From sequence record MW021758.1: a stretch of 64,000 bases of DNA; one strand, written 5' to 3'. Made by a program: the position numbers and the translations under genes. Shown piece by piece: positions 2,323 to 17,523 of the stretch (the first letter of the stretch is position 1; the number at the start of each line of letters is the position of its first letter). The notes beneath the pieces are model-generated. The model was not told the origin of the DNA. It was given only the letters and a program-made list of their open reading frames with translations, and ran no database searches.

Positions 2323-2889
2323 TTAATTACCGCCTTGTTCAGTGACGATGAACTTATCGTTCTCGGTCGTAATCGCTTTACCAGATTCGGTAAGGATTGC
2401 GCCGCGTGGCATTTTCATGCCGCCGGTGATGGTGATGTCCAGGTTACCGCTCCAGACGTGGGAGTTGTAATCCGTACCTGCTTTAGTCTGTACAGTGACG
2501 ACCGCAGTTTCGCCTTCCGGGATGAACGGCAGAAGTTCAGTTGCGTTAGCTACGTCAACTTCATCGATGTAGATTTTGTATTTGGTCTGAATCAGCGGCA
2601 GCAGATCCGTTACGGTGTTGGCTGTCTCTGGCAGGATCAGGGAAGGGCCCTGGGCGCCCAGCAGTTTGTTCAGATCGATACGGGTATACGTGAACACACG
2701 TTGACCGCTATAAGGGCTACGACCGGTTACAGGAACGCTCACGCGTTCTTCAGTACCAGGAACAGTTGCGCCTTTAACGTCGCCAAACGTCAGGTAGCTG
2801 GCGTTCAGTGCTGGGGTCACGTTGTTCTGTACAGTGATGAGATCAGCAAGGATCTCAAATTTAGGGCGTCCGAATAACTCAACGTACAT
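2323..2889 (-). CDS. Virion structural protein, possible tailspike adaptor (188 aa)
   Basis: SPYSGQRVFTYTRIDLNKLLG motif resembles the paralogous baseplate-type domain also seen at 55015-58729; C-terminal ILTESGKAITTENDKFIVTE repeat. Confidence 0.55.
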   Translation of the reverse strand: MYVELFGRPKFEILADLITVQNNVTPALNASYLTFGDVKGATVPGTEERVSVPVTGRSPYSGQRVFTYTRIDLNKLLGAQGPSLILPETANTVTDLLPLIQTKYKIYIDEVDVANATELLPFIPEGETAVVTVQTKAGTDYNSHVWSGNLDITITGGMKMPRGAILTESGKAITTENDKFIVTEQGGN

Positions 2890-2933
2890 GGGTAAACTCC
2901 ATTGAAATAAAACTTTTAGTTCAGCTCATAGAA

Positions 2934-3500
2934 TTAACAGATGCCAAACAAGTCTTCGAATGCTTTCTTAGGGAAGCTTAAAGGACGGGTCTGTTTAGCT
3001 TTGACTTTCCCGTAAGCCGATATATAACAAGTACCCAATAAAGAAGAGTCAGGGCGCTCCAGTGCAACGAACAATACGTTATCGCTACGATAACCGTATA
3101 CGTCGTAGATCTCATCTTTATTTTTTGCCGCTTTCCCTGCCAGATATTTAAAGCCAGGGAACAGATCTTCTACTGCACGCCCAAACTCACTGTCCGTTTT
3201 CAAGTTGGGGATCTCGCGGTACTCACCTTCAGTAATACGTCGATTGGTCAGACAGAGTCTTCGGGTAGGTTCCATCATCTGCCGAGGTGTATGCATGAAT
3301 AACTCATGTACCACATGGGTCAGTTGACTTACGTTGGTGTCGTATAACTCACACAAAGGTTTGAGTGTTTCCGACATACGCAAATGTTCCATGAACAGGA
3401 CAGGATTAACTTTAATCGTATCCTTCAAACGTTCACGTTCTTCATTTACCTTCCGCTTCTCCGTTCCCGGTTCTCCGGGTCGACGAGTGGTGACTGCCAT
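2934..3500 (-). CDS. Hypothetical protein (188 aa)
   Basis: ORF tiles with neighbours on the minus strand; no recognised motif. Confidence 0.6.
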   Translation of the reverse strand: MAVTTRRPGEPGTEKRKVNEERERLKDTIKVNPVLFMEHLRMSETLKPLCELYDTNVSQLTHVVHELFMHTPRQMMEPTRRLCLTNRRITEGEYREIPNLKTDSEFGRAVEDLFPGFKYLAGKAAKNKDEIYDVYGYRSDNVLFVALERPDSSLLGTCYISAYGKVKAKQTRPLSFPKKAFEDLFGIC

Positions 3501-10879: not shown

Positions 10880-10903
10880 GCTGGGTAGGGGCCCCTACCC
10901 AGC
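10880..10903 (-). terminator. Perfect 24-bp palindrome / terminator-like hairpin after RNAP beta
   Basis: gctgggtagggg|cccctacccagc; short A-tract at 10871-10875. Confidence 0.55.
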
Positions 10904-10920
10904 GGCTACGTAACTACTGA

Positions 10921-12072
10921 CTACTCTTCGTTGTAAGCGTTTAGCATCGCAGTGGCAATGTGTTGGAGAAGGATGTTAACCATCCCCGACATCATCGCTG
11001 AGTTTACGATACGTGCGTTTACAGACTTGTACGAGAACTGGAGATCTACGTCCCATGGTTTATCGCCAGGAATCACTGGACCGACAGTACGGCACTTACC
11101 AGTGAACACCCCAGACACCACGGACTTTTTCTGGTTACCCACCACGATCTTGTCCCCGTCACCCATAGAGCGGTCATGGGTAATGTAGATACGAATCGCC
11201 ATCATATCAATCTCAATAGAGAGACCGTCCAATCGCGTAGGCGTGAAAATCTGCCCAGTCTTCGCTTCTGTACCACCCAAAGCCTTAGAAAGCTTGGCGC
11301 GTTGGTTATCGTAGTAATCCGCAATTTTCCGTAATGAAGGAGACATGTCTTCCTTCTCACCGAAATAGATTACCTCGATTTTCTCGATATCTCCTACATA
11401 CTTAGCACGCGGAGCTGGAGAACCCAAACGTTTCAATGCTTCCAAAGTGGACTCGTCGAACAAATCACTCGCAGAAGAAACCTCATCCTCAATGTAGCCG
11501 AGAACCGTTTCATTATCTACATGTTCGCCAACCGCTACCAGATTACGAATACCCTGGTTAAAGTTAACCAAGATAGTACGCGTATGGCTAGTCGGCGTGT
11601 GCAGACGTTTAGAGAGTGATTCGGAGATCAAACTCGCATCCTCAAAGGTCGAGTTGTTTTCCATCAGTGCGATGTTAGCCAGAGTACCTGACTTCCACAG
11701 CACCTGAGTCGGGTCACGCCAGTCGCGCTGGAAGAACCCAGGATGGTAACTTACGATCTCACCTTCTACTACTCGCTTACCCACTTCCAGTTCAGATACT
11801 ACGGCGTGTGGAACAACGTGACCAGTTACCACACCGAAGCGACGACCTAATTGGATACGCTCCTCACCTAATTTCTCATCGTCGTATTTTACGACCATGT
11901 AGTTAGGGCCTTTCTCGGTCACTACCCCTGGGCCTTTAGCCGCGGTAGCGAAGGTATCGTCAACACGGTGAGCCATGACTTGCTCGTACCCAGTACGGAT
12001 AGGAGAAACCATTGCGTCACTAGAAGCGATAACGTGAGATTGCTGAATAGAGATGAAACTTACTCGCTTTGG
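10921..12072 (-). CDS. rpoB: Virion RNAP beta subunit (phiKZ gp178-like), exon 2 (383 aa)
   Basis: PKRVSFISIQQSH (RpoB ANRALMGANMQRQ), RTGYE, NSTFEDASLIS (GYNFEDSILVS) and GDKIVVGNQKKSVV (GDKMAGRHGNKGVI). The ORF-track start at 12111 lies inside the intron. Confidence 0.9.
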   Translation of the reverse strand, partial: PKRVSFISIQQSHVIASSDAMVSPIRTGYEQVMAHRVDDTFATAAKGPGVVTEKGPNYMVVKYDDEKLGEERIQLGRRFGVVTGHVVPHAVVSELEVGKRVVEGEIVSYHPGFFQRDWRDPTQVLWKSGTLANIALMENNSTFEDASLISESLSKRLHTPTSHTRTILVNFNQGIRNLVAVGEHVDNETVLGYIEDEVSSASDLFDESTLEALKRLGSPAPRAKYVGDIEKIEVIYFGEKEDMSPSLRKIADYYDNQRAKLSKALGGTEAKTGQIFTPTRLDGLSIEIDMMAIRIYITHDRSMGDGDKIVVGNQKKSVVSGVFTGKCRTVGPVIPGDKPWDVDLQFSYKSVNARIVNSAMMSGMVNILLQHIATAMLNAYNEE

Positions 12073-12496
12073 TCTAGTCGTCAATGAATTCGCTAAATTC
12101 ACCTGCGGCATTACCCGCTACCCTAGCTGTTAGCTAGTTCAGGAGACTATATCATCGCCCTATTCTTTAGGGCGCTCTCTATTTCGACCCTCGCTCGAGT
12201 GGTCTACTCTACTCCGTTACATGCTACACATCCGTGTCATGTCGTTTCGATAGTCGTTGAACGTTCCCCGTGGTATCTACGATACGGTAGAGGCTTCGCT
12301 GCGAAAGATCGGATTGGTTACCGAACTCGATTCCCCATTGTACATCCACACACTTTTTAGAGCATTCACGTTTGTCCTTTCGAACTCCGTTGTAGCAGTG
12401 TGGCTTTAGTGGGTTCCCGCAATTAAGAGAGTTATTCGACTGGGGTTACTCCCAGAAGCGACCCGTACTTCAGTTAGTGAACTAAAGTAAATATTG
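12073..12496 (-). ncRNA. Group I self-splicing intron, IA2-like, ORF-less, 424 nt
   Basis: Minus strand: P element UUAAUUGCGGGAA; R UUCAACGACUA; S GAUGAUAUAGUCU; P7 A(C)GACUA/UAGUCU; P3 CUCUCU/AGAGAG; P8 CGCCCUA/UAGGGCG; P7.1 and P7.2 hairpins; P1 CGAU|C/GGUCG with a U-G pair at the 5' splice site. Removal restores the YDD-PKR motif. Confidence 0.92.
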
Positions 12497-15400
12497 ATCG
12501 TCGTATGTCGCAAATGGAGCTACGAGCGCTGACGTACTCAGAAGGTTACCGACACCGTTCTTCGGATCCGGATCAACAGTTGGAACTGCTGTACCACGAA
12601 GCGAGGTCAGGTTAGGGTTAGCGGTAAGGAATGTGTTAATCCCTACGTCACCGTTATCCACCGATGCTTCTGCACGAATACCGATATCCGATTTATGGAA
12701 CGCACGAGTACGGCGAACCATTGCACGTTTAGACCGACCGCCTGTACCAGAGTAAGTTACGTTCTCTTTCTCTTTAAGGTTGTGGATTGGGTTAGAATCC
12801 TCAACGATGGCGACGGATGGATCACGCTGGATTGCCGCCAATACTTCAAACGGCGGGATATCGATAGTTGCACGGGAACTAACAGGCTGACTGGCGTAAG
12901 AACGATACGCGTTGGACAAAGTACGGTAGACTTCGCCAGGCATACGTTCGTAACCACGGAACAGAGAACCGTCTGAGGAAATATCACTCGGATAGTTATC
13001 GGTCACCAGATAGAAAGCTGCCTTGATGAACAGGTCGTTCAACTCGGTCGGTTCTTTCATATCGCGCAGTACGTCAATAGCGATAGGATCTAAGAACAAC
13101 GCATTGATGTTGTCGATCTCACGCACGTAACGCGCACTCAGGTTAGCCATACCGAACAGCAGGTTAAAGGTGTCCGGATTGTCCAGCTCTTGTACAGAGA
13201 AGCTACGGAGGTATTTCTTCCAACGTTGGAGGGAAGCCCAAATCAGACTACTATTACCACCGTGGACAGGGAAGCGCCAAACTTCATCAGCAAAGACTAA
13301 CTCGAACGTACCTGGGACAGGCTCGACGCGAGTGCCTTTAACACGACGCTCTGGTTTTACTGGGAGAGTGTTCATCAACTTAGTGATGCCCATGTGATAC
13401 ATGAGGATCGCAGCCATCGGAATCTCTTCGCCCATGATCTTAACGATCACTTGCTCAACCGGAAGTTTCTCATCAGGTAATCCCAACATCTCGTTGATAG
13501 AACCTAACACATTACCTTTAGCGTCGACGAGCTTACCTTCATTATTCATGAAGATGAACTCTTTACCTTTGCGACCAACTGGAACCCAGCCCTTCGCCTT
13601 AGCTGCCACTACGACGTCTTCCGTGTAGTTATTCGCCAGGTTAGGGTAGTCGAATGTAAACAGGATTCCATTCAGTACAAAGGAGACGAACTCTTTTGCC
13701 AATGCGGAATATTCGCGCGGTACGTCCTGATCTTCCGTGAATGTATTGCCCAGTACCAAATCGGTAACGGTAGGGACGTCGAGCTGACTAGACCTTTCGA
13801 TCAGGTCAACGAGGACATGGCCCAAATCTTCACTTGCGCGCGAAGAGCGCTCAACGAAGAGTTTACCGTAGTACGTAGACAACGCCACGATGCTCGGAGA
13901 GATCTTACGGATTGGTTTATCGAACTTAAGTTTACGCATGAAGTACTTAGTGCCATTCACGCGATACTTACCATTCTTATCCACTGCCGGTAATTGGAAG
14001 CGGATAGTAGAAGGACTACCATAGACCGGCACGACTTTAATCGTGTAGTCGTAGAGGTCGTTCAACGCATCGGATTTCTTCTCGACGCGATAATCCGTAA
14101 TTGCCAGACCTGCCTTCTGTAAACTGACGACCATGTTTGCAACATCTTTCTGGAAGACATTACTGATGTAATCTTGGTCGTAGTTCAGTAAGGTAGACTT
14201 CAACATGGTCTTATCGACCACGTGAGGGATGTCCGGAATCTCTTTCGCTTTAAAGTCCCACAGTTGCTCGTGAGGGATCTTCATGAAGTCTTCCAGTGTA
14301 CCTTCACCGAATGGTGCTTTGATACTCTTGAAGCTGTTAGCGAGGCGTACATGACGTTTAAACTCGTTACCCGAGATAAGTCCTTTACTCAGGAGATCAC
14401 GAGAACGTTTTTCAACCGGTTTGATCAACGGGTTGTTGGTATCGATGACTTCCTCTTCCGATTTACCCGGAGTAGGCTTGTCTACTACAACAGTCGTTTC
14501 CTCTGGCTGGAAACTCGTGGTCGCCGTGACGTCGGTATTTTGAATTGGCGTTTCGCTGCGCTTAGTTGCCAAAATCTCACGAGGAGTTTTGGTTACACGC
14601 TGAGCGCTACGACGAAGACGTGCGATGTCACTTTCGCCTTTGTCGCCAACGCTGACATCTACATTCGGGTCGCCAGGTTGTGGTTCAGGGACTTTAATGT
14701 CACTGACTTCGGCTTCACCTGTTTCTACAACTTCTTCTTCAACAGTGATTTTGTCGGATACCGAAGTCGTCGTTACGATGTTCTGCAAGTAGCGATCCAT
14801 CGTCTGAGACATTGAACCGAAACCGATACCGCGCTCGTTCTCTTCCGACTTAACCCATTGGTCAAGTTTATCGAAGGAGAGCAGGCTGAACTTACCGTTA
14901 CGCATGACAACCAGGTTAAGGTTCTTCAATGCATTACTTGGGATGGAACCCAGGATGGATTCATCGCGGTTCTCTGACATCCACTTCCAAAGATCAGAAA
15001 GGAACAGAGACGCGTCATCTTGGAAGTAACCCAGGCGAATACGGTTCATCGACTCAACTGCTACGATCGGATCGTCATCGCCCATTGAGAGTGAAGATTC
15101 ATCGAAGGACTCGAACGCAGGTTCATCACCCCAACCTAACGCACTGGCATCAAACGCCTCGTTGGAGAACGCAGTACCCTGGCCAGTCATGATACCGGGA
15201 TAGAGGTTATCGTAGTACCGTGCGATAGTATCGCCTTGTTGGCTCTGCAGATTACTTTGCTGAGCCTGACGCGCATCTTGAATTACATCGTAGGCTTCAA
15301 CCGAGACGTTCAGGTATTGACGTGACGGTAATACATCCGGCAGAGTAAGGAAGAGGAACTGGGGACGACTAGACTGTTCGCCGAAATATTTGACACGGTC

Positions 15401-15856
15401 AGCAAACGTCTTCATCAGGTTTTGGAAACGGAACCACCGGGCCATTGGGATCGGTTGGTATTTCCATTGCATCGGGATCAAAGCGTAGTTAACAACGATT
15501 GCAGTTTGACGATCGTCTAACGCTCTGGCGATGTCTGTAACGCGTCTGTAGCGACGATTACGAATCAGCCACTGGCGCTTCAGGTTCTCTACGTTAAAGG
15601 CGCCACGACGGCGAGGAGCGCCTTCATGGGAGGTCATATCGGTAACCTGGTCTACGTAGGGACGAAGACGTTCATTGATAATCGGGAAGAACTGATCGTC
15701 CGGGCCTAAATCGGAAACCGACTGAGGCAGGTAGTGAACGATCGCTCCACGAGGGAGTTTGAAGTTCTCCAGATTAAACAGTTTCGGGGTAGTTAACCCC
15801 GAAGTAGAACGTATACCGAATCGTTGATAGAGTTCGGGATAAGTAATGTTACTCAT
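12497..15856 (-). CDS. rpoB: Virion RNAP beta subunit (phiKZ gp178-like), exon 1 (1120 aa; spliced product about 1503 aa)
   Basis: GKYRVNGTKYFMRKL (RpoB GTFIINGTERV), VTYSGTGGRSKRAM, RAFHKSDIG and PFATYDD (PFLEHDD); ATG at 15856 has GGAG at usable spacing. Confidence 0.9.
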
Positions 15857-15885
15857 TGTCAGAGACACTCCTAAGAGTAATTAAT

Positions 15886-17523
15886 TTATTTCGGCCCGCC
15901 AGTGATATTACGGAGTACCAAGTCGAGGTTATCTACGTCAGCAGAAAGTGCCAGGCTACCTCGAGCAGATACGTACCACTCTTTCTTACTCTTGATGAGT
16001 TCGTACTCTTCCAGAGAATCACGACCGTACACTGCAGTGAAAGTACAACGGTCACCGTCATAGTCCGCGCCCAGCGGGGCGATACGTGACGGGTGTGGAC
16101 TGAGGGTCATATAGTGAGTCGCTTTTTGCGACTGGTCTGGGAACTCATTGGCAATGAAGTCCGGACCAAGGCGATGCCAGCTTTCGTCCAACTCAGGGAG
16201 AGATTGCGTCTTCTGAGTTGTCTTACAATAGATGTTTCCTATGTAAGTAGAGCCTGGGCCAGTTACCGGATAACGGGTAACGATACCGGCCATTTTGTGC
16301 CACTCACGATAACCGCTCAGATAATAAAGAGAGGTCATGTTAATAGGGTAGACATACTTTTTGTCGAACCCTTGAGGTAGCTCATTAATATCTGCAAAGA
16401 AACGCCAACCTTGTGGGCCAGCATAAAGCAGACCAAGGTAGTAGCCATCGACCATAATTGGACGCTGACGGAAACCTAGGATCTTGTACCGGGTAATCTC
16501 TGCATCGATACCCTCTTTAGTCGTCCAACGAGTGACGGACTCTGGAGAAGGTTTTACGAATACTGCGCGCAGTGTCTTAGGATCGGTCAAGCGAACTTCA
16601 TCTTCGGTGTTACCGGAGAATACCTGGCCAACCCAACCGTTACGAATGAAGTAACGTGTCTTAGGAAGTACTGCTTTAATTACTTGATACAGACCGAGCT
16701 GGACGTCGTTGATGACTGGAGTACGGTTAGAGCCCAGGCGATCAGTACCTACGTTCATCGGCGTGATTACGTTAGCGGTACCGTTCAGGATTTTACGAGA
16801 TGCCCACTTGGACAACGCAAACCCCTTCTTGCCTTTAATCATGTTAAAGACGTACTCAAAGATCTCGTTGAAGTTACGTTGTAAACTCAGACGAGAATAG
16901 TTGATGATTGGGTCATTGCGGTTGGTGGATGAACCGGAGATACCGTTAGCGATGGAAATCATTGCACGGTAGAATTTGTTGATCTCGTCTTCTGAGGTTC
17001 TTCCTGTGCCCGGTTCAACAATCAGGTCACGTAAACCTGCCGGCATCACCAAGATGCGTTCGAGCATTGCTTTATTACGGTTTTCGTTAATCAAGCGAAC
17101 GCGAAGGTTACGGATCTCAGAATCGCCTTCCTCTATAACGAGGTTAGGGAAATGTTTAACGAAGAAAGCAAAGCCTGTTTCACCAACCGTCTCATCGGCT
17201 GGGATGAAGTCTTTTTTCTCTTCGTCAAATATCGCGTAACGAGTACCTTCGATAATTTCGGTATAGAGACGTTTCAATGTCCCCAAACGTTTGTAAATCA
17301 AAGGGTGGAAAATGGACGTGTTTAAATTAATATAGCTGAATCTTCCGTCACGTTCTGGGCTACCTAGCGTACCGTAAGTCTCTACGCTAAACAAACCGTC
17401 CCGGTTGAAGTTACGTGTGCCCGTTTCGAAAATTTCAGTTGTGGTCGTTGCTCGCATGGAACGAATAAGTTCTGGAGTAACGTCCATAATGAAAATGTTA
17501 AAAGGCATTTCATTGAGACGCAT
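15886..17523 (-). CDS. rpoC: Virion RNAP beta' subunit, N-terminal/catalytic part (phiKZ gp180-like) (545 aa)
   Basis: DGLFSVETYG; VMPAGLRD; catalytic LGADYDGD (NADFDGD) motif; divergent from the tape measure gene as in phiKZ. Confidence 0.92.
   Translation of the reverse strand: MRLNEMPFNIFIMDVTPELIRSMRATTTTEIFETGTRNFNRDGLFSVETYGTLGSPERDGRFSYINLNTSIFHPLIYKRLGTLKRLYTEIIEGTRYAIFDEEKKDFIPADETVGETGFAFFVKHFPNLVIEEGDSEIRNLRVRLINENRNKAMLERILVMPAGLRDLIVEPGTGRTSEDEINKFYRAMISIANGISGSSTNRNDPIINYSRLSLQRNFNEIFEYVFNMIKGKKGFALSKWASRKILNGTANVITPMNVGTDRLGSNRTPVINDVQLGLYQVIKAVLPKTRYFIRNGWVGQVFSGNTEDEVRLTDPKTLRAVFVKPSPESVTRWTTKEGIDAEITRYKILGFRQRPIMVDGYYLGLLYAGPQGWRFFADINELPQGFDKKYVYPINMTSLYYLSGYREWHKMAGIVTRYPVTGPGSTYIGNIYCKTTQKTQSLPELDESWHRLGPDFIANEFPDQSQKATHYMTLSPHPSRIAPLGADYDGDRCTFTAVYGRDSLEEYELIKSKKEWYVSARGSLALSADVDNLDLVLRNITGGPK

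Follow-up and report, generated by a model that had tools for sequence, protein, structure and literature searches.

A virion RNA polymerase gene in two pieces

The window analysed here is a stretch of 64,000 nucleotides (nt) from sequence record MW021758.1, the genome of Serratia phage vB_SmaM_Yaphecito (genus Moabitevirus, 275.5 kb), which is 100% identical to window positions 10900-13500 with coordinates unchanged. On the minus strand it carries a split gene for the beta subunit of the virion RNA polymerase (RNAP), together with what is almost certainly a group I intron lacking an open reading frame (ORF) of its own. The upstream ORF (12482..15868) runs to ..LVAPFATYDD, adds the residues QYLL and stops, and the downstream ORF (10921..12111) reads MPQVNLANSLTTR-PKRVSFISIQ.... 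In GenBank, the two are neighbouring coding sequences (CDS), gp15 (12482..15856) and gp14 (10921..12111), both named [quoted passage not shown]. An earlier note, made from the letters alone, had two RpoB-like ORFs meeting at PFATYDD and PKRVSF with 424 nt between them, without stating the strand, and expected that annotation would yield two false genes. The ORF list and the genome of phage Moabite bear out the former, and the GenBank record the latter.

In Moabite, the gene is a single uninterrupted CDS of 4512 nt whose flanks are 99.0% identical to those of Yaphecito, and the junction reads GACGAT^CCGAAG, that is ..ATYDD^PKRVSF.. (here and below, ^ marks the insertion point). Two more distant Klebsiella jumbo phages are likewise uninterrupted at ..(A/S)TYDD^PKRVNF... 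Since the intron-less Moabite gene reads through the junction, the insert in Yaphecito is delimited exactly as the 424 nt from 12496 to 12073. The profile phrog_3148 (“RNA polymerase beta subunit”) is matched at its positions 2-1050 by the first piece and at 1051-1422 by the second. The two ORFs are halves of one gene, cut between two codons, and the final codon of exon 1, GAU, encodes the second Asp of ..ATYDD; we refer to this insertion point as the DD^ site. Pfam gave no match for either half of the beta subunit (10924..15868 (-)), and phmmer searches of each exon product against the PDB sequences gave none either. Only phage-specific PHROGs profiles recognise the protein, which is too divergent for Pfam, so that PHROGs are needed.

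Group I fold and subgroup

Based on the Rfam models, the sole match in the 64 kb, both strands included, is to RF00028 (Intron_gpI) with 37.5 bits and E 5.6e-6. It spans 12506..12123 (-) with full-length coverage of the model (1-253), and E is 7e-8 when the local 801 nt are searched. The structure was drawn by hand, and P1-P8 (73 pairs) were mapped on a MAFFT alignment of the Yaphecito intron with the introns of Kodama, Totoro, 2050HW and PhiPA3, freed of their endonuclease inserts, and with the intron of the 2050HW beta' gene. Standard pairs are formed by 91.8% of the cells; in controls with the 3′ partners displaced by 1-3 columns, the share is 36-49%. Both sides are changed in 27 of the 73 pairs (4-14 in these controls), and none of 500 shuffles attained the observed values. 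The conserved core from P3 to P8 is present with both of its domains (P4-P6 and P3-P7-P8) and the P3/P7 pseudoknot, as are all four signature strings, AAUUGCGGGAA, UUCGCAGC, GUUCAACGACUA and GAUAUAGUCU.

Individual helices show how the covariation arises. The 5′ splice site is defined by a wobble pair, U12497.G12462, and in P1 an exon change from C to U is answered in 2050HW by a guide change from G to A (C-G to U-A). The P1 extension of Totoro contains a C-G to U-A and a U.G to U-A change, two base pairs of P3 are fully compensated with respect to Kodama (CUUCCU/AGGAAG), and P5b is fully compensated between GUUC-GAAA-GGAC in Yaphecito and Totoro and ACUG-GAAA-CGGU in Kodama. The G-binding site of P7 (A12257-U12144, bulged C12256, G12255-C12145) is the same in each of the six introns aligned. 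Local folding recovers P1/P2 (z = -2.9), P7.1/P7.2 and P9-P9.2; the minimum-free-energy fold of the whole intron was uninformative (z = -1.5) and mis-paired P5b with respect to the covariation-supported fold. The boundaries and the fold of the insert are thus established, and that it is a group I intron at the DD^ site is as good as certain. All elements from P1 to P9 that the earlier note had listed for a “complete” group I core are present (Table 1), apart from one end: the 3′-terminal guanosine is absent, base 12073 being an A, which that note had not noticed.

The two hairpins P7.1 and P7.2, which the earlier note had taken as marks of subgroup IA2 and which are typical of subgroup IA, lie between P7 and the 3′ strand of P3, the position that defines subgroup IA2. 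The classical phage introns of this subgroup (T4 td, nrdB and sunY, SPO1 and Twort) share with Yaphecito this placement of P7.1/P7.2, the bulged C of P7 and P9.1/P9.2, whereas they sit in other genes; to our knowledge, all of them end in G. BLAST gave no direct match of the Yaphecito intron to these classical introns. The relatedness is indirect: the Yaphecito intron is 77% identical to the 2050HW intron over 111 nt, and that same-site intron matches the Twort introns with 71% over 184 nt. In summary, the intron is probably of IA2 type and belongs to a lineage found at the DD^ site of chimallivirus-type virion RNAP beta genes. A 3′ layout of three hairpins is common to Yaphecito, Kodama, PhiPA3 and 201phi2-1.

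Table 1. Features of the split beta gene and its intron, with candidate 3′ termini (window coordinate = 12497 - i for intron position i)
Feature	Position	Strand	Basis or remark
Exon 1, virion RNAP beta	12497..15856	(-)	ORF list, GenBank gp15, PHROG 3148; gene continuous in Moabite
Exon 1 start	annotated ATG at 15856; ORF open from GTG 15868	(-)	
Exon-1-frame UAG stop	12482..12484	(-)	4 codons inside the intron (..DD QYLL, stop)
Group I intron, 424 nt	12073..12496	(-)	exact insert relative to Moabite and Klebsiella phages; Rfam RF00028; covariation
P1	12459..12500	(-)	exon CGAU + intron C (12500..12496) with guide GGUCG (12463..12459); local fold, covariation
P1 extension, 10-bp hairpin	12489..12466	(-)	enclosed by P1
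P2 hairpin (CUGGG / CCCAG)	12440..12455	(-)	covariation alignment, local fold
P3 5′ strand CUCUCU	12426..12431	(-)	partner 12180..12175
P4-P5 domain	12300..12421	(-)	Rfam alignment, covariation, fold
P4	12421..12416 with 12305..12300	(-)	
P5	12413..12410 with 12337..12334	(-)	
P5a/P5b	12403..12346	(-)	includes GUUC-GAAA-GGAC hairpin
Extra hairpin in P4-P5 domain	12331..12308	(-)	
P6, P6a, P6b	12261..12299	(-)	Rfam alignment, fold; compensated pairs in P6a
P7 5′ strand, A-(C bulge)-GACUA	12251..12257	(-)	partner 12149..12144; same in 6/6 aligned introns
P7.1 (12244..12215) and P7.2 (12204..12186)	12186..12244	(-)	fold
P3 3′ strand AGAGAG	12175..12180	(-)	covariation alignment
P8 hairpin	12156..12174	(-)	5/6 pairs changed on both sides across relatives
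P7 3′ strand UAGUCU	12144..12149	(-)	covariation alignment
P9 (12137..12123), P9.1 (12118..12105), P9.2 (12101..12085)	12085..12137	(-)	fold
3′ tail, 12 nt, UUGACGACUAGA	12073..12084	(-)	terminal base 12073 = A; 6 records identical
Exon 2	10921..12072	(-)	first codons CCA AAG CGA = PKR..; stop 10921-10923; PHROG 3148, intact homologues aligned
3′ terminus A12073			correct protein; fits 2-bp P10 (CC/GG) and lineage tail spacing; unorthodox chemistry
3′ terminus G12074			+1 base, frameshift
3′ terminus G12079			in frame, +TR
3′ terminus G12082			in frame, +TTR
No splicing			two polypeptides; possible restart at AUG 12111 behind weak AGGG

The terminal adenosine and exon ligation

The explanation which we favour as probable is that a chimeric, ORF-less intron of IA2 type is spliced from the transcript of the virion RNAP beta gene and has spread recently. 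P1 would form in the primary transcript by pairing of the internal guide (12463..12459) with the end of exon 1, GTP held in the G12255-C12145 site of P7 would attack after U12497, and the freed exon 1 would be joined to exon 2 at 12073^12072, giving ..ATYDD-PKRVSF.. in a single beta subunit of 1507 aa. Precise ligation at GAU^CCA would leave the junction peptide ..LVAPFATYDDPK in this subunit. That the intron splices at all, and above all the mode of exon ligation, is what we infer here, with A instead of G as the 3′-terminal base.

Several observations weigh against this explanation. The Rfam score lies under the gathering cut-off of 50 bits, so that a default scan at gathering thresholds leaves the window empty and RF00028 appears in E-value mode alone; the check by a group I covariance model proposed in the earlier note thus succeeded by E-value and fell short by score. 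The low score is largely due to long insertions relative to the model, namely the P5 extension and P7.1/P7.2, and the Rfam alignment has a 68-nt insertion at the P7.1/P7.2 point. Same-site introns reach 82.6 (2050HW), 49.0 (Totoro), 46.4 (Kodama), 67.8 (PhiPA3) and 87.4 bits (201phi2-1). More serious is the 3′ end, ..CUAGA^CCAAAG, where A12073 is the last base at the junction demanded by intact homologues. This A is found in six of six records, and the omega-G of group I introns is missing, while all nine delimited relatives (Kodama, Totoro, 2050HW, PhiPA3, 201phi2-1 and loci L029, L031, L036 and L042) end in G; in addition, the G-binding pair in P7 of Yaphecito is an ordinary G-C. For exon ligation, the terminal guanosine takes the place of GTP in the P7 site (PMC3679873, PMC2588497). 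Since a terminal G is needed at P7 in this second step, an intron with A at its end should ligate exons poorly. For the Tetrahymena intron, replacement of the terminal G by A reportedly blocks ligation unless the binding pair is altered as well. A scan of metagenome contigs from JGI for the spliced junction, allowing 0-9 extra bases, found none. Canonical ligation at the correct junction is therefore not assured, because this intron ends in A and its relatives in G, and the statement that splicing builds the enzyme contains a real mechanistic gap, because the 3′-terminal guanosine is missing.

Simple ways around the terminal A were considered and rejected. A sequencing error is contradicted by the agreement of three haplotypes from at least four sources. 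A look-up of the exact gp14 protein led to six places, all ending in A and none to a G-ending variant, which would still have turned up because the A-to-G change is synonymous in the gp14 ORF. With the boundary one base further right, the mRNA is unaltered, but the intron would end in C and the splice would follow a C; with the boundary one base further left, the intron would end in G, at the price of cleavage after A, without the U.G wobble, and of a change from DD to DE. If G12074 is combined with the normal 5′ site, the product is longer by one base and leads to ..DDTKASKFHLYSAISRYRF and a stop. A +1 ribosomal slip on AAA-G would yield DDTKRVSF, and DDTKR is found naturally in homologues; we do not propose it, as nothing in the sequence would stimulate a slip. 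As a separate observation, CGAC in the 3′ tail (12077..12080 (-)) is complementary to the guide GUCG (12459..12462 (-)), as is the end of exon 1. The tail could thus compete for the guide, although the match of only 4 nt may be due to chance.

One of the 3′-end routes listed in Table 1 must work, since the lineage is viable and the element has spread, and our preference, by a small margin over even chances, goes to exact ligation at 12073^12072. P10 (exon CC with guide GG) fits this junction alone, and the tail that characterises the lineage after P9.2, UGA(A/C)GA plus about 5 nt, sets the terminal position at 12073. Both points speak against an otherwise active ribozyme that takes an upstream guanosine, G12079 or G12082, as its 3′ terminus and produces a beta subunit with DD-TR-PKR or DD-TTR-PKR. 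No other G close to the 3′ end preserves the frame. The motif is also tolerant of change: homologues have P, T, A, M, S or G in the position following DD, and substitutions of the second Asp in PhiKZ (D1072A/G/Y) leave the phage viable (PMC11620839). However, extra length at the junction occurs in 0 of 33 uninterrupted homologues from IMG/VR in a tblastn-based comparison, and we regard this route as unlikely. About as improbable, or slightly more so, is a loss of correct ligation, either by a stall after the first step or by a frameshift at G12074, with the phage living on a split beta subunit, which would be an intermediate in gene fission by intron decay. The N-terminal fragment would then end in ..DDQYLL, and the C-terminal one would start from AUG 12111 as MPQVNLANSLTTR-PKRV.. 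with the N-terminus MPQVNLANSLTTRPK. The terminal A of all six records with G12074 adjoining it, an exon-2 frame which stays open for 15 codons into the intron and contains an AUG, and a weak Shine-Dalgarno-like AGGG 10 nt upstream of that AUG, comparable to AGGGGA of gp12, are in favour of fission; furthermore, RNAP subunits of jumbo phages are naturally split, and splitting driven by introns has been proposed (PMC7598289). Yet all helices of the ribozyme are intact, with P3 compensated over the junction of the chimera, an open frame of 15 codons with an AUG arises by chance in roughly 10-20% of cases by our estimate, and the loop of P9.1 contains the AUG, with part of the AGGG inside the P9 stem. 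In addition, no homologue is divided at the DD^ site without an intron, and the break would hit a conserved motif and add 4 + 13 foreign residues.

A more radical reading treats the 424 nt as an ordinary spacer or another mobile element between separate genes, with the likeness to group I introns arising by chance. The Rfam score under the cut-off and the two genes in GenBank point that way. Against it stand the E-value of the RF00028 match, the likeness of nt 1-249 (95% identity) to the Kodama/Totoro intron, which in its 3′ part matches introns above the cut-off, and the lack of a sigma-70-like promoter on the gene strand. With the exact insert inside one codon-continuous gene, the split PHROG profile and the strong covariation, it is effectively refuted. 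Beyond precise ligation after A, in-frame use of a G and a split or mis-spliced product, the remainder is left to something else. The broader statement that this is a natural group I intron without a 3′-terminal guanosine, located in an essential gene of a phage lineage that is viable and was sampled at least three times, independently, with ligation after A or with an RNAP made from mis-spliced (+2/+3 aa) or split beta, is a serious possibility which we place just short of even.

Chimeric make-up, relatives and spread

The nucleotides 1-22 and 23-249 of the Yaphecito intron match nt 1-22 and 1288-1514 of the Kodama intron with 95% identity. This pattern identifies them as the Kodama/Totoro intron minus a 1265-nt insert with an ORF in the P1 loop, the point of the insert being the loop of the P1-extension hairpin between 12475 and 12474. 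From nt 250 (12247) on, the sequence is unrelated to that of Kodama, and the breakpoint lies just past GAACGUUCAACGACUAUCG, a block of P6'/P7 that is conserved universally. From P7.1 to the end, both the Kodama/Totoro and the 2050HW-type introns have a 3′ domain unrelated in sequence to that of Yaphecito. Hence, nt 1-249 are homologous via Kodama and 2050HW, and nt 250-424 have the architecture and the UGA(A/C)GA tail motif in common with the lineage and nothing more. The two strands of P3 flank the breakpoint and are mutually compensated. In BLAST searches of the 3′ half, only P7-P7.2 matches other introns. [quoted passage not shown] For P8, P9-P9.2 and the tail, no match was obtained among 50,697 phage records (BLAST), IMG/VR or JGI metagenomes, and neither a donor of the 3′ domain nor a G-ending variant was found in three IMG/VR pattern scans, one scan of JGI metagenomes and phage BLAST. 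The intron is a recombinant of two introns of the same type, with nt 250-424 derived from another, unsampled one that shares this architecture.

Within the insert, no ORF is longer than 53 aa (the next are 50 and 41 aa) and none has a Pfam match, so that the absence of a homing endonuclease, as claimed before, is confirmed. This fits loss or lack, as the sister phages carry such genes in the loop of the P1 extension, namely a NUMOD1/I-HmuI-like ORF of 413 aa in Kodama and Totoro and a NUMOD4+HNH ORF of 328 aa in 2050HW, Haymo and ParM-25. Modules have also been shuffled between sites: the P5b version (12374..12389 (-)) is common to the beta-site introns of Yaphecito and Totoro, and the P5b of the Kodama beta-site intron is the version of the beta'-site intron.

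Introns of this kind are already known from the DD^ site of 201phi2-1 and PhiPA3. The insertion follows the second Asp of a DD-x-(K/R)-R motif (..ATYDD^PKRV in Yaphecito, ..SMNDD^MKRV in PhiPA3, ..IAHDD^MKRI in 201phi2-1, and in four IMG/VR contigs), and eight of eight same-site introns follow GAU. A survey of 44 IMG/VR loci encoding the virion RNAP beta gene revealed 33 uninterrupted loci, seven interrupted at the DD^ site, three with a ~1.6-kb insert elsewhere and one in no class. Three of the seven are records of 2050HW, PhiPA3 and 201phi2-1 and four are new contigs; three of the seven introns (336, 366 and 400 nt) are ORF-less. In the uncultured jumbo-phage contigs L038, L040 and L041 (about 980-2590), a ~1.6-kb insert is located four codons downstream, after ..MDPKRV, apparently a further place of insertion within this conserved motif.

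The closest known counterpart is 201phi2-1 gp273/274, annotated in GenBank as a joined CDS “interrupted by a mobile ...” element, whereas Yaphecito is annotated with two genes. For 201phi2-1, there is earlier proteomic evidence, and two spliced long reads at the DD^ site were reported in a 2024 long-read study (PMC11512511). Its intron occupies the same point of the same gene (..IAHDD^MKRIGF..), follows GAU, is ORF-less (336 nt) and possesses P7.1/P7.2 and the three-hairpin 3′ layout. In contrast to Yaphecito, it ends in G (..AUAUCACG^AUG), scores 87.4 bits with Rfam, lacks the long P5 extension and the extra hairpin, and is not detectably chimeric. The PhiPA3 gp210 intron (gp211/gp209) encodes an endonuclease with a demonstrated role in phage competition, conferring an advantage over PhiKZ (Birkholz et al., Science 2024, PMC11620839). 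We confirmed in the sequence its site (..SMNDD^MKRVGF..), which is that of Yaphecito, and its ribozyme, which is homologous to the 2050HW and Kodama introns (73% identity). Different from Yaphecito, this intron has 1352 nt, carries the ORF of an HNH nicking endonuclease in the P1 loop and ends in G. The introns of Kodama and Totoro and of 2050HW, Haymo and ParM-25 share site, exon flanks and internal guide with Yaphecito, but they contain the P1-loop endonuclease ORF and end in ..UUUCUG, ..UUUCCG or ..UUUUCG. New in Yaphecito are the chimera, an identical tract shared by three haplotypes and the terminal A.

Within the Moabiteviruses the site is polymorphic. It is empty in Moabite, occupied by the ORF-less intron in Yaphecito and BUCT660, by the Kodama-type intron in Kodama and Totoro (1682/1683 nt) and by the 2050HW-type intron (1371 nt) in 2050HW, Haymo and ParM-25; the flanking exons are ~99% identical among these phages, except for Totoro with ~84%. 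Differences between the empty and all intron-bearing alleles cluster at -10, -7, +3, +9 and +12 to +15 and are all synonymous, including a serine switch from TCG to AGT (flanks 12487-12507 and 12057-12072), while the rest of the beta gene differs by ~1% between Moabite and the intron-bearing alleles. The clustered changes fit co-conversion or selection for target sequences resistant to the endonuclease. Of the features which characterise mobile introns, presence/absence polymorphism and co-conversion of flanks are thus found, and an intron-encoded endonuclease is not.

The six records with the exact gp14 protein represent three haplotypes, namely Yaphecito, BUCT660 with SRR18178461, and SRR29074712, SRR29074720 and SRR29074721. 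Their flanks differ by 0.4-0.8%, and a perfectly identical tract of 1644-2662 nt is centred on the intron and exon 2, where 11-14 differences would be expected and none is observed (P about 1e-6 to 1e-5). This suggests that the tract is the footprint of a recent transfer with co-conversion, and hence a recent spread. Several viable backgrounds have therefore received the element and retained it. The route by which an intron lacking an ORF moves can only be inferred. Spread among the Serratia Moabiteviruses may have occurred through general recombination in mixed infections or through homing in trans by the endonucleases of relatives, whose target site the ORF-less intron would remove.

Two further observations concern the other large subunit. 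The gene just upstream (15886..17523 (-)) is beta'-N-like with the catalytic motif GADYDGD and is named “RNA polymerase subunit alpha” in GenBank; based on this motif and its end-to-end match to PHROG 2986, it is therefore the N-terminal beta' piece of the virion RNAP. Moreover, a second group I intron (Rfam 58 bits) resides within the metal-binding motif (..NCDFDG^D-MLGG..) of a beta'-like RNAP gene, at about 2879-3147 of locus L007 (2050HW), at 146833-147663 of the Yaphecito genome (outside the window) and in locus L008 (Totoro), where an HNH ORF lies in its 3′ part; it is absent from Moabite, Haymo and ParM-25. About 105 nt of it (L007:2920-3026) recur with ~97% identity in introns from Twort-like, Kayvirus and Silviavirus phages of Staphylococcus, which implies that phages of Gram-negative hosts and phages of Gram-positive ones have exchanged ribozyme modules recently.

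With regard to annotation, gp14 and gp15 should be merged into a single joined CDS, and likewise their counterparts in BUCT660, since the present entries carry 13 false N-terminal residues on gp14 and 4 false C-terminal residues on gp15. The terminal A is the only surprising point, and it bears on whether a group I ribozyme tolerates a terminal A in nature. If true, ligation after A in spite of an ordinary G-C site would break, in nature, one of the best-established rules of group I chemistry, and a split beta subunit, if that were true, would be a living intermediate of the proposed route by which intron decay splits RNAP genes. The DD^ site is the place where the PhiPA3 intron endonuclease attacks a competing phage, and an ORF-less intron at this site would make its carrier immune to the two endonucleases of its relatives without the cost of encoding one. 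The Serratia phage group is thus a natural system for intron invasion, endonuclease loss and module swapping.

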